In this document: one piece after another, positions 22,125 through 26,535 of the stretch
Layout: each line of letters opens with the position of its first letter
Position numbering within the stretch: position 1 is the stretch's first letter
Assembly (NCBI GenBank): GCA_025594325.1
Contig: JANHCV010000001.1
Coordinates: forward strand, 2,790,001-2,854,000
Reading direction: 5' to 3'
Length of the DNA stretch: 64,000 bases
From: Blastocladiella emersonii ATCC 22665
Taxonomy: Eukaryota; Fungi; Blastocladiomycota
The notes under the pieces: generated by a model
Told to the model about the DNA's origin: nothing
Database searches by the model: none
The model's input: only the letters and a program-made list of their open reading frames with translations
Program-made: the position numbers and the translations under genes

Positions 22125-23325
22125 CTACTTGTGGTGCGCCCTTGGTGGCGCGGGAACCGTGAAGCCGTTTCCTGGCGACGCGGGCGCGGGCAAGATCCGA
22201 CTCGACGAGAGCGCGGCCATCGGGATACTGGACCCGCTGCGGTGCGCTGGGACGTGGTACTCCTCGAGCATGCTCGAGACGTTGGGCGCGGGCCGATGGA
22301 CCACGAGCGCGACCGTCGACACGAGAAAGTCGAGACCGAGCGCGGCGTAGATCCGCGTGTACACGGCAGCGAGGTCGGAGACGACCAGGTTGCCGCGGGC
22401 CGACAAGTACGCGATGGCGAGCACGAGCGCGAGCAAGAGCGCGATGCCCTGGCTCAGAGCGATTCGGCGCGACTTGTGCGACGACCACGAGTTCCACGAA
22501 CGGCTCGCGTGCCAGAGTGGGGCGAGGAGCATCGACTGCGGCCGTTTGGCGTCGACTGCCGCACTAGCCGGCTCGGTCGCGGCCGTGGAGCGGAGCGGAG
22601 TCAGGTCGCGCCGCGCCGCGCGCCACGTGTGGTAGTACGCGAGGTCGACCGAATTGGGCGCCTCGATGTGAACTTCGGGCGCCGACGAGCGCTGGAATGA
22701 ATCGAAGCGGACGCGAATGCCGGAGAAGTCGCGGTCCAGCCGCGAGAGCGAGTAGATGAGGATGACCGAGAGCGTAGCATCGAGTACAAGACTAGGAGCG
22801 CGTTGTGTGATGCGTGAGTGATGGACAGAGTCGCGGAGAGCGGTAAGCATGAGCGTACCCCCAAACGAACGGAATCGACTTGAGAATGCGCGCCGTCGAA
22901 CGGCGCAGGACGACCTCGTCGACGATGCGGAAGCAGAGGAATCCAGTGAACAGGACGACCGTGGCCACCATCAGCGCGCGCGGAATCCACCGCGGCCATG
23001 ACGGATATAAGCAGGCGAAAACTTGCAACTTGTACAGGCTGAGGCAGGAATACAGCATGACGCCGATCTGTGTCATCAAAAACATGAATAGCGTGACATA
23101 ATCGAGGTAATTTTGCTTGTTGCGGACGAGGAGCAGCCCAACCCACACGCCGATGTCGCCCGCGACGAAGGCAATCCACTGCAGGAGGACGAGGAGATAG
23201 AAGAGCGTCCGGCGCTCCTTGTACTTGATGGCCGAGAAGACGAGGCCGCCGAGGCTCACGACGAAACCGGGGCTCAGCACGAGCAGCGTGCGGCCAACGT
23301 CCTGTACCCAGTTGACGAGGACCAT
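22125..23325 (-). CDS. Orphan seven-transmembrane (GPCR-like) protein, ~377 aa
   Basis: ATG at 23325 (MVLVNWVQ); one intron at 22792-22858. Seven hydrophobic segments with a long polar loop between TM5 and TM6. Confidence 0.6.
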
Positions 23326-23677
23326 CGGGCTCGGTCCAGCCGAGTCGAGGGGGGTGGAGATGATGATGGCCGGGAGGATACGGCAGGAGCACGGGCTCTC
23401 TATGAATCTATGAGGTCTAGGCGTTGCAGGGAGTACGGCCTCACTGCGCTTGCATTTGCTACGTTTGTGCTCCGCGATGCGGGGAAAGCAGTTTGAGATG
23501 AGAGGAAACAACAGTTGTCGGTGGACAAACAAGGCCGGTCGAGCTAAGCCACCACCAGCCACCATGGTAGCCACATGCGCGTGAGCGGGCGCGTCGCGTC
23601 TCAGCGGTCGCGTCGCGTCACTCGCTTTGTTCGACTCTCTTGCTCTGCTCCCGCAAATAACGCATATTATTATGGTG

Positions 23678-26256
23678 TCATGCAGTGCCACTTGTGCCGC
23701 TTGATGACCCAGCAACTGCTGAGGCCGCCGCCACCGTTTGCGCCTTGGCCTTCTCCGCCCAGATCTCGCGGTTCGTCGCGAGGGTCGCGAGAATCGGTTG
23801 CACGGCCGTGTACGAGTTGAAGGCCGTGAAGAGCGGACTAACGACGTAGTCAATGAAACCGAGCTGGCTACTCGCGAGGTTGACCTTCTCGCGGTCCTGT
23901 GTGGGCGCGACAAGTCAGTTGTCATCGCAATGACGGCGAAGAGCAGAGGCAACGTACCATAAACGGCGAAACGTCCAGGCCCATCTTGCGCTCCGTGTCG
24001 CCTTGCCGGAAGAACTCGGCAATGATGAGCTTGTACCACTTCTCGTACAGCGACCAGTGCTTGGTCGGGTTGCCAACGTCCGCGCACTTCATCATCATCT
24101 TGAACAGCGTGACGCGGTCCTCGCGGTTGGTCTCCGGGTCGAGCGTGCCCTGCGTCGCGCGGTTCTTGAACAGCGAGATGATGGGCAGGTGTTGCGCGAG
24201 GTCCGTCGCGAGCACCATCTCGATGACAATCTCGCGGAAGTTCTTGAAGTCAGACTTGGGGAGACCCTCGAGGAAGTTGCACTCGGGGCGGCGAAGAATG
24301 TTGAACGAGGACGCGAGGTGATGGTTCTCGAGGACGGCGCGGTCGTTGTACAGGATGGAGCGCGGATCCTGCGTGTTGATCAGGAACAGGTTGTTGAATC
24401 CCGGGTGGTCATAGTCGTGGATCGCTACACAAGAGTTGTAGAAGAGTCAGTTGTCGCGATCGGCCACGCGGTGATCGTGAAAGCGAACCGGCAGCAACAA
24501 AGATGGCCATGAGCTCGACGTCGCCGAGCACCTTGCTGATCTCGGGCAGCTGCGTGAACACGGAAATGCTGTGCAGTACGTCGGCGGCGTGAAGACGGTT
24601 GTGGTAGGGCAGGTCCGAGTGGTAGCCGTTTTCGATGGTCACGGCGAACGACCAAAAGCGGTTGCCGGGAATCGCGAACGCGGCAAACAAGTTATGCCGC
24701 TTGAAGAGTTGGAAGAGCATGCACGAGAGCGGCTGGTTCGTCGTCGCGTCCGCGTACTCAAACACCGGGAAGTTGTAGTCGGGAAGCAGCATCGCGTAGT
24801 GTTCGAGGGTGGCGGGACCGAGGTCAGGCTGCGAGCGGCCCTCCTGCGTGGAACTCGTGTCGAGCGACGAGGTGATGGAGCGCGACACCCCACCGATCTC
24901 GGGCGTACCGGGGACCGGCAGCGACTGCCGGCGGCTCGGTACAGGCTCGGGTGTCGACGGCGGATGTTGCGGGATCTGGGAGGAGCCCATGGAGCCCGTT
25001 ATACTGGCGACGGCGACCACGTTGCTGCCGCGCCGGCGGGTACTCGAGCCACGGCCGCGAATCTCACCGCGGCGGCGAGCAATCTCGGAGAAGAGCCACG
25101 CCTCCTGCTCGTTGTCCATGCGGACGCCGCGCTCGGACAGGTCCTTTTCGAAATCAGGCGTGAGCAGGTTACTCGATGTAAGCAGAGTCAGGATGTGGCC
25201 GAGTTTCATGGTGACGTGAGGCGAGAGCGCGGTCTCCGCCATGCAGCTCCTGACGAGGTCGATGCTGCGCTCCAGTGGAGAGTCGAACTCCTTGTGGCTG
25301 AGCTGGGCCGTCTTCTGGATGCTCTTGAGTTGGTGATTCAGGCGTTGGTTCGCGCGCTCCATGTTGCGCTGCGAGCGGAACTGCATACGCTGGAACACCT
25401 CGAGCTCGTACGACGTGATGGCGATGACGATGGTTGAAGCGATCAGGAGCGCGGCGAAGAGAAAGAGCGGAAAGAAGTTGTCCGAGACGGACAAGTTCGA
25501 GTTGAAGTTGATCGCGATCTGAATCCCGTTGATCACGATGAACGAGACGACGATGACGGTACACGCCACGGTCGCATAAACGAAGCGGATGCGCATGGAG
25601 ATGAAGTAGGCGAAGATGAAGCCCGTCTGGATCATGCACGAGACGAGAACCTGGGCCGACGGCTCCATGACGAAAAAGCGAACGGCGAGGCCGAATACGG
25701 CGCCGATGACCACGACTGCACTCGAGATGGCGTGGAGCCAGCGCGAGAACTGGGACGCCGGGAAGCGCCGCGAGGCGTAGAGTGCAGCGGATCCTGGGAT
25801 CAGAACGAACGCGAGATAGAAGAGTAGGTCTTTCCAGACGTCGTAAGACTCGGTGCAGCCCGAGGGCAGACATGTCGAGCAAAAGTAGCCGAGGGGACAG
25901 TGCTGTGCGAGCTCTGTGGCCGGAAACTGGCGCGTGGAGCGGAACTCGGCGAGGCGCGCCACGTCGGCGGGCGTTTTCGCCATCGAATAGAGATAGAGGG
26001 CCGAGCAGGCCACGAGCACGGCCGTCAACCCGTTCCGCCAGCGGTAAATGTTGCGCTCGTAAAAATACTTTTCATAGTCGCGCTCCTCGGCAGCGTCGTG
26101 AAACGACAAGCTGAACTTGCGCATGAGCGAGGGCGGCTGCGCCTGGCCCTGGCTCTTGGACACGTCGGACATGGAGAAGGAGACCGGGGCCTGGTCCGTA
26201 GACCTAGGCTGCTTCGAGTGATCAAGCTTCTTCGACTTCATGGTGACATGTTTCAT
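23678..26256 (-). CDS. Membrane-bound class I 3',5'-cyclic nucleotide phosphodiesterase (~6 TM N-terminus)
   Basis: Catalytic motifs YHNRLHAADV, HDYDHPG, LENHH, TDL, KCADVGNP, EFFRQGD.E and SQLGFIDY are all intact. Hydrophobic N-terminal module. Introns near 24429-24480 and 23897-23958. Confidence 0.9.
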
Positions 26257-26535
26257 CGGTTTGTCATGGGTTGAAGGTGGTTGAATCGGCTGCAAGAAGC
26301 TGAAGCTAATCGCGAGCTCCGGCCAAGCATTGCCTCGACTCCAGACGCTTCCCAGCGCCGTCTTGCATGCGAAACATTGACGAGAAGTTCCACAGCTCGG
26401 ACAAAACGCGTGAGAAACGCGTCGACCCGCGCGTGAGACACCGAGTGCGAGACATCACGTGATGGTTTCACAGGATTCGTCGCGCGCGCCGATCTTCTCC
26501 CCGTCTCCGCGGCCTTGGATGCAGACGCCGCAAAA

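Follow-up and report, generated by a model that had tools for sequence, protein, structure and literature searches.

In a Blastocladiella emersonii protein, the N-terminal 300 residues are remotely homologous to one hexahelical membrane half of an animal-type adenylyl cyclase (AC) with its helical stalk, and they are joined in one chain to an intact class I phosphodiesterase (PDE). The gene (23678..26256 of the 64,000-nucleotide window, the whole stretch of DNA analysed; this gene and all features located below lie on the minus strand) has three exons, as judged from open reading frames, three-frame translations and exon mapping of the public protein KAI9189613.1 (P0001), whose first 803 residues are identical to the three-exon product. 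Translation starts at the ATG at 26256 or 26241 and stops at the TGA at 23680-23678, giving a product of ~810 residues in which a six-transmembrane (6TM) module is followed by a putative coiled-coil stalk, then by a conserved linker and finally by an intact PDE4-like catalytic domain; the N- and C-terminus are both predicted to be cytosolic. An earlier note on this DNA had proposed the fusion of an animal-AC-type 6TM module and helical linker to an intact class I PDE from the span 25330-26120 (residues 59-322 of the ORF 24409-26295), and both the profile searches and the structure comparisons described here support that proposal. The three peptides that it quoted are all present on the minus strand in this ORF, as residues 61-97 (FSLSFHDAAEERDYEKYFYERNIYRWRNGLTAVLVAC), 228-245 (FAYFISMRIRFVYATVAC) and 294-306 (TSYELEVFQRMQF).

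Exon 1 (24489..26241) encodes the N-terminus, the six TM helices, stalk, linker, a low-complexity tether and the first 39 residues of the PDE domain. Intron 1 (24425..24488; 64 nt, GT..AG, branch-like site CTGAC) separates it from exon 2 (23958..24424), which carries the PDE catalytic core (Pfam PDEase_I, E 6.9e-57), while intron 2 (23897..23957; 61 nt, GT..AG) precedes exon 3 (23678..23896), which completes the PDE domain and adds a short tail before the stop codon. The splice sites were placed by keeping the frame continuous between GT..AG boundaries and by reference to the public gene model. Pfam was run on the exons individually, and the other analyses used P0001.

Hydropathy places the six TM segments at residues ~87-106, 156-175, 186-210, 214-234, 237-262 and 274-297 of the ORF 24409-26295, in line with six long helices in the AlphaFold model, and the cytosolic loops are basic, giving a positive-inside pattern. 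Ahead of TM1 (25978..26037; hydropathy and model) the family alignments define a cytosolic helix (26038..26115) with the motif L-x-F-x-D-x3-E-x2-Y-x3-F..W, in which F47, E53 and W68 (P0001 numbering) are nearly invariant across the family; the helix aligns to AC5 residues 220-245 and also to the pre-TM7 segment of AC5 (734-760). TM1 is connected to TM2 by an extracellular loop of ~50 residues that contains four Cys (25834..25977). Exactly four Cys are found in this loop in 20 of 45 family members, and in a second subfamily the loop is 9-19 residues long and has no Cys. Within the segment TM2-TM6 (25405..25833; hydropathy, model and family alignment), TM4 and TM5 are joined by a conserved cytosolic R-x-R-F loop (25582-25593) that aligns to AC5. 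The post-TM6 motif Y-E-x-E-x3-R-x-Q-F (25378..25410; family alignment) contains E281 and R285 (P0001), which are 98% conserved and align to AC5 E401 and R405 as well as to the motif that follows TM12 in AC5 and AC8.

The TM6 helix extends into the cytosol to form a putative parallel coiled-coil stalk (25294..25404), assigned from its heptads and from the AlphaFold model, in which helix 220-283 is unbroken. The hydrophobic fraction is 0.57 at the a/d positions vs 0.22 at the remaining positions, and one core position is an Asn that is 85% conserved. Across the N-terminal half, conservation peaks in the stalk, in the linker and in the cytosolic motifs on either side of the bundle, and the TM helices and ectoloops are weakly conserved across the family. 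The linker (25078..25284) is family-specific, reading DSPLE(K/R) .. ADP .. LLTPD .. EQEAWLFSEIA in the family alignment. Neither a single-sequence nor a profile query found a relative of it in the PDB, and its profile is unrelated to UCR1-UCR2 of vertebrate PDE4 (hhalign probability 0.25%); modelled in isolation, it is helical and not compact (pLDDT 77, pTM 0.40). Between the stalk/linker and the catalytic domain lies a Ser/Pro/Arg-rich tether of ~90 disordered residues (~24811-25077) within which RRRGS (25024..25038) forms a consensus site for basophilic kinases of the PKA/PKG type. Of 58 members, 41 have the pattern [RK][RK]x[ST] no more than 60 residues past the linker, vs 13.9 expected from shuffles. 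A tether of this length speaks against a direct coupling through helices such as cyclases employ.

The PDE4-like class I catalytic domain (23795..24606; Pfam and PDE4B match) is split by the two introns. PDEase_I (PF00233) scores 279 bits at P0001 546-774, above threshold, and PDE4B (3d3p) is matched at E 5e-75, with a catalytic-domain identity of ~43-50%. The HNxxH, HDxxH, ATD and CAD..NP motifs and the invariant Gln are conserved in the PDE4B alignment, so that the PDE motifs are intact, as the earlier note had stated. Because the Gln, Asn and Tyr residues that PDE4 uses for cAMP are conserved, the substrate is, judging from sequence, probably cAMP. UCR (PF18100) is absent from the precomputed Pfam annotation, which gives only PF00233, and the protein has neither a cyclase domain nor a cyclase-transducer element.

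Profiles of the fungal family searched against 177,635 distinct PDB sequences link the module to the membrane halves of animal ACs, with AC5 and AC8 the only proteins to reach E<0.01. The 45-member family profile placed AC5 (E 4.8e-7) and AC8 (E 5.9e-4) at the top, no other PDB entry falling below E 0.1, and an 84-member profile gave 8.3e-7 and 2.4e-5 for the same two proteins. Of two disjoint subfamily profiles, A4 found AC5 at E 4.4e-3, and A5 found it at E 1e-8 in one unbroken alignment of profile positions 13-226 to AC5 220-416; A5 also matched AC8 (E 1.3e-4, residues 162-365), and both M2 halves were aligned too. AC5 was therefore recovered by all four profiles (E 1e-8 to 4.4e-3) and AC8 by three of the four (E 2.4e-5 to 5.9e-4). 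The alignments are colinear from the pre-TM1 motif through the post-TM6 motif and cover the second AC half as well, with the pre-TM1 helix, the TM4-TM5 RxRF loop and the post-TM6 E..R..F as the cytosolic elements that match AC5 and AC8 in either half. The AC motifs that the earlier note had given for mammalian ACs proved real: those of human AC5, including HYPAEVSQRQAF, appear in the HMMER output, each aligned at the matching fungal position. AC_N is the best Pfam match to the module (17.1-18.8 bits, E 0.001-0.003), but it does not reach the gathering threshold of 30.9 bits, spans only TM5-TM6 and the post-TM6 region, and was obtained for only one of 45 family members, the B. emersonii protein itself. 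Single-sequence phmmer of the module against the PDB returned noise only, and AC9, Rv1625c and ImcA had no significant sequence match to the family profiles in the PDB. In a search on language-model features, AC_N is carried by each of the three best-ranked named clusters.

For the structure comparisons the fungal side was a predicted model, the AlphaFold model of the module (pLDDT 92.1, pTM 0.87). With VIA-align the best structural match was ImcA (Z 17.3), with AC5 at Z 16.2 (229 residues, 3.2 Å, chain 215-447), AC9 at Z 16.0 and AC8 at Z 12.7 (M1-plus-stalk); the next unrelated chain scored Z 8.6-9.4, and GPCRs and rhodopsins 5.9 or less. The earlier note had staked its reading on profile or structural similarity to AC membrane domains; the former is found in AC5 and AC8 and the latter in AC5, AC9 and AC8 (Z 12.7-16.2). 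The structural and sequence registers are consistent at both ends of the module: model residue 8 corresponds to AC5 215 and profile position 13 to AC5 220, and E248 falls, by extrapolation, on AC5 E401. In the Foldseek comparison that had been suggested, ACs filled the upper ranks of the PDB matches, although no E-value was 0.001 or lower; it took the VIA aligner to bring the match out. An ESM Atlas shape search aligned the module (TM 0.69-0.70 over 227-237 residues, rmsd 2.5-3.1 Å) to clusters in which MASE8 precedes a cyclase, GGDEF, HD-GYP or kinase output. Pfam MASE8 (PF20968) was not listed as a match to the module at E up to 10, and the sequence match to ImcA/MASE8-type modules is not significant (E 0.7-2.7).

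The family comprises 90 or more members, drawn from chytrids (including Batrachochytrium), Blastocladiomycota and Rozella, and appears to be confined to zoosporic and early-diverging fungi. Exhaustive phmmer over 1.84 billion representatives recovered 69 proteins related to the module; in all 69 Guanylate_cyc is absent and PDEase_I is present instead, and all 30 of the 69 for which the source name was looked up come from zoosporic fungi. A word-indexed homologue search of the module had given no matches, missing relatives of 30% identity that the exhaustive search later found. No description of an AC-module-PDE family was found in the literature searched. The assignment implies a change of annotation for the whole family, whose members now carry the label 'PDE4D/PDE7A-like' or are listed as hypothetical.

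The module shares with M1/M2 of animal transmembrane ACs (AC5, 8sl3/8sl4; AC8, 8buz; AC9, 6r3q/7pd4) six helices with cytosolic ends, the pre-TM1 F..(D)..LE..Y..F, the TM4-TM5 RxR loop, the post-TM6 E...R..F and the continuation of TM6 as a cytosolic helix. Unlike these enzymes, the fungal protein has one 6TM unit per chain rather than two and a PDE rather than a class III cyclase as output, lacks the cyclase-transducer element, carries a 50-residue four-Cys ectoloop after TM1, interposes a family-specific linker and disordered tether before the catalytic domain, and scores under the Pfam AC_N (PF16214) threshold. A single 6TM unit per chain is also found in Pseudomonas aeruginosa ImcA (8wcn), a 6TM-GGDEF homodimer, and the fungal protein is predicted to dimerise in the same manner. 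Mycobacterium tuberculosis Rv1625c/Cya, which works as a homodimer forming 12 TM helices, likewise combines a single 6TM unit with a helical stalk, but its structural match to the fungal module is weak (Z 7.4-7.5) and a sequence match is absent. Modules of the MASE8/ImcA type are single 6TM units that form homodimers and enter promiscuous fusions, with cyclase, GGDEF, HD-GYP or kinase domains as the output (PMC10904736). The AC-type module is thus not an exclusively animal feature and resembles this broader group of bacterial sensors. We know of no bacterial MASE8-type module fused to a class I PDE.

On the output side, mammalian PDE4 shares the catalytic domain with its metal- and nucleotide-binding residues and a basophilic kinase site upstream of it, whereas the fungal enzyme, lacking UCR1/UCR2, is integral to the membrane. 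Choanoflagellate Rh-PDE also places a polytopic membrane domain upstream of a class I PDE. In Rh-PDE a membrane sensor, a helical linker and a dimeric class I PDE are combined so that the receptor controls the PDE directly, with no G protein; its sensor, however, is an 8TM retinal rhodopsin, and the fungal module matches rhodopsins and GPCRs weakly, rhodopsins giving Foldseek E-values of at least 1.5 and TM scores of 0.15-0.17, without a rhodopsin fold.

Three independent profiles each put AC5 first of 177,635 sequences and leave thousands of other PDB membrane proteins at E>0.05, a colinear match extends over three motifs and recurs on M2, and the structural matches, at Z 15-17, lie 6-8 units over the next unrelated chain. 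These observations make it most improbable that the module is just any six-helix bundle whose motifs agree by chance and which shares no ancestry with cyclase membrane domains, even though pairwise identity is only 11-18%, AC_N stays below threshold and helical bundles can, by the aligner's own note, give Z ~13 by arrangement alone. PDE3 (NHR1) and most apicomplexan PDEs also have six predicted TM helices ahead of a catalytic domain that belongs to one broad clade with that of PDE4 (PMC10865986); the literature consulted treats these helices as undefined regulatory or anchoring regions and not as cyclase-type modules. The fungal module could be an anchor of this kind, closer to those than to the cyclases and perhaps descended with them from one ancestral membrane PDE; a search of 1.84 billion representatives that returned 69 relatives, of which all 30 with a looked-up source name are from zoosporic fungi, speaks against this, and we consider it unlikely.

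With moderate confidence we favour an explanation in which the homologous AC-type module senses a membrane signal and gates the PDE through the stalk and linker. Two copies of the protein would associate into a homodimer, giving 12 membrane helices in the manner of the single-6TM cyclases Rv1625c and ImcA, and their TM6 extensions would wind into a parallel coiled coil. A signal received within the bilayer or by the disulfide-bonded ectoloop (candidates are a lipid or small ligand, the state of the membrane or a partner protein) would alter the stalk, and this alteration would reposition the linker between DSPLEK and WLF and so gate the catalytic domains. Because the ~90-residue disordered tether comes after it, the linker is more likely to be a docking or autoinhibitory element than a rigid lever, and the RRxS site in the tether may add PKA/PKG-type feedback. 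We infer that the PDE may be regulated by a ligand or lipid. The module could instead be AC-homologous but passive, an anchor, dimerisation or targeting device that places the PDE, for example, at the plasma or flagellar membrane beside cyclases and leaves regulation to tether phosphorylation only. Such a role would suit the long disordered tether with its conserved RRxS between module and catalytic domain, the poorly conserved TM helices and ectoloops and a whole subfamily without the Cys loop, and anchoring has long been the default view of AC membrane domains (PMC12414865). A simple anchor, however, would need none of the bundle-flanking cytosolic elements, stalk and linker in which conservation is highest; in addition, AC5 and AC8 retain the same motifs in M1 as well as in M2, and related bacterial modules precede many signalling outputs, a pattern typical of sensors. 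A passive role is accordingly possible, but we would not expect it.

The membrane domains of ACs make up ~35% of the protein, and their function has been an open question since 1989. Lipids have been proposed as their ligands only recently (PMC11606603, PMC12414865), and a receptor role is debated even for the ACs (PMC12414865). That the module is a true ligand or lipid receptor, an interchangeable input that zoosporic fungi place on 12-TM cyclases, cyclase-less anchors and PDE, and by extension with the PDE3 and apicomplexan anchors as diverged copies, seems to us rather doubtful; if it were so, one membrane signal could raise cAMP synthesis and alter cAMP breakdown directly, without G proteins.

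Under the sensing and gating explanation, the module is a candidate sensor shared with cAMP-making enzymes and apparently wired to the opposite output, cAMP breakdown. A natural protein with an AC-homologous module on the opposite enzyme offers an orthogonal read-out for chimera experiments, for which cyclases provide a precedent (PMC4821796), and the family provides a simpler, probably homodimeric version of the AC membrane module, in which a comparison of ~90 sequences shows constraint on the cytosolic motifs and stalk, not on the helices. Zoospores of flagellated fungi use cyclic nucleotides for taxis, and the architecture described here suggests direct receptor-to-PDE signalling in these organisms.

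The N-terminal six-helix module of the B. emersonii phosphodiesterase (three exons, window 23678-26256, minus strand) is, we conclude, remotely homologous to the AC_N/MASE8-type hexahelical domain. Hydropathy delineates six TM segments whose cytosolic loops are basic, which places both termini in the cytosol, as a cytosolic PDE domain requires. The ectoloop after TM1 (25834-25977, minus strand) spans 50 aa and holds four Cys. In an AlphaFold model built from the family alignment only, with no templates (module pLDDT 92.1, pTM 0.87), TM6 and its extension form a single 64-residue helix, and the extension shows heptad periodicity with a conserved core Asn. It is followed by a strongly conserved linker (DSPLEK..ADP..LLTPD..EQEAWLFSEIA), a Ser/Pro/Arg-rich tether of ~90 aa that contains a basophilic-kinase consensus RRxS (25024-25038, minus strand), and a PDE4-like catalytic domain (Pfam PDEase_I, 279 bits). 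The earlier note had read the class I PDE motifs as intact, and the match to PDE4B (E 5e-75) with conserved catalytic residues bears this out.

The module's match to AC_N in Pfam is sub-threshold, and a single-sequence search of the PDB returns no match. When a 45-member family profile is compared with 177,635 PDB sequences, human AC5 (E 4.8e-7) and AC8 (E 5.9e-4) rank first and no other entry falls below E 0.1. The alignments to AC5 are colinear, pairing the pre-TM1 motif with AC5 220-265 and TM2 through the post-TM6 motif with AC5 272-414, while both module ends also align to the second AC5 half (734-780 and 911-1021). Two disjoint subfamily profiles recover AC5 at E 4.4e-3 (A4) and, from A5, which lacks the B. 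emersonii protein, at E 1e-8 in one continuous alignment (AC8, E 1.3e-4); an 84-member profile gives AC5 at E 8.3e-7 and AC8 at E 2.4e-5. Judged by sequence, the module is closest to animal-type cyclases.

With the predicted model as query, a VIA all-against-representatives comparison is led by ImcA (Z 17.3), AC5 (15.1) and AC9 (14.8), the next chain scoring 9.4. A second VIA comparison with this model gives AC5 (Z 16.2; 229 residues, 3.2 Å, chain 215-447), AC9 (16.0) and AC8 (12.7), with unrelated chains at 8.6, Rv1625c at 7.5 and GPCRs at 5.9 or less. The aligned AC ranges comprise M1 and the first helical domain, with end points that match the HMM alignment register. Foldseek alone gives no significant E-value with the module model. 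An ESM Atlas shape search finds bacterial MASE8 clusters (TM 0.70) whose fusion partners are cyclase, GGDEF, HD-GYP or kinase domains. Language-model features place three AC_N clusters first (scores 0.85-0.87), a ranking to be taken as no more than a lead. The proposal that the PDE carries an AC-type membrane module is thus upheld by the colinear AC5/AC8 profile matches together with the structural match to AC5, AC9 and AC8.

An exhaustive phmmer search with the module against 1.84 billion representatives yields 69 relatives, 21 with PDEase_I and none with a cyclase domain by Pfam; several short relatives stem from gene models that split a longer PDE. A catalytic-domain search adds 117 new proteins, 48 of them with the module, which it finds in no vertebrate PDE4. 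Named sources include many Chytridiomycota (Batrachochytrium and Spizellomyces among them), Blastocladiomycota (Catenaria, Allomyces, Sorochytrium), Rozella and Paraphelidium. Family members are named 'hypothetical' or 'PDE4/PDE7-like', and their precomputed Pfam annotation is PF00233 only. More distant module-bearing PDEs (P0111, P0114, P0145, P0121 and P0110; module E 2e-15 to 7e-11), one from the aphelid Paraphelidium, one from the EukProt transcriptome 'PLAT9195' and the others from further assemblies, may widen the family's range past the classical zoosporic fungi.

The three peptides quoted in the earlier note all lie inside the minus-strand ORF 24409-26295. Three-frame translation and the DNA define two short GT..AG introns (24488-24425 and 23957-23897, minus strand) and a stop codon at 23680-23678. 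Exon mapping shows that residues 1-803 of the public protein KAI9189613.1 (P0001; 'hypothetical protein H9P43_001046', Blastocladiella emersonii ATCC 22665) are exactly the three exons; exon translations were searched one by one, and P0001 served as query in the remaining analyses. P0001 extends to 1181 aa: past residue 803 a 379-nt intron (23707-23329) removes the in-frame stop, and the C-terminal part derives from the adjoining downstream 7TM-like gene (merged region 22128-23707, minus strand). Since the other introns are 61-64 nt, against 379 nt for the joining intron, and the closest homologue, a Sorochytrium protein of 775 aa, terminates directly after the PDE domain, this fusion looks like an annotation merge. 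Many chytrid models, including P0002, P0009, P0010, P0026, P0027, P0033, P0034 and P0036, end just past the linker motif ..EQE with V and a few odd residues, which points to gene callers reading through an intron conserved at this codon; the B. emersonii gene has no intron there.

Architecture and conservation pattern are established by these data. The positions that hardly vary across the family lie in the cytosol: F47, E53, W68, E281 and R285 (P0001 numbering), residues of the stalk, and SPLE. Family alignment A2 separates into two groups by ectoloop: in 20 of 45 members, the B. emersonii PDE among them, the loop has 41-61 aa and exactly four Cys, and in a second group it has 9-19 aa and no Cys. 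By comparison with ImcA (PMC10904736) and Rv1625c, single-6TM enzymes that form homodimers with 12 TM helices, the PDE protein would likewise be a 12-helix homodimer whose two stalks pair as a parallel coiled coil, and the stalk would relay signals to the conserved linker from the bundle or the ectoloop. In the main rival explanation the module serves passively to anchor, dimerise or target the enzyme. Within the signalling model, a disordered tether speaks against a rigid connection, and we therefore prefer a linker that docks or autoinhibits, combined with feedback by a basophilic kinase. The tether motif [RK][RK]x[ST] occurs 15-30 residues past WLFSEIA in 41 of 58 members (13.9 expected from shuffles) and, by analogy to PDE4 long forms, may act as a site of PKA/PKG feedback.

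Phosphodiesterases go unmentioned in the B. emersonii genome paper (PMC9730499), which reports diversified cyclases and TM-domain fusions. Neither the reviews of AC membrane domains (PMC12414865) nor those of apicomplexan PDEs (PMC10865986) refer to a PDE bearing a cyclase-type module, and full-text literature searches turned up no fusion of this kind. In the ESM Atlas, the six-helix N-terminal fold is also predicted for a 398-member cluster of oomycete protein kinases (TM 0.74) and for a haptophyte cluster (TM 0.65), so other eukaryotes may couple the module to further outputs.
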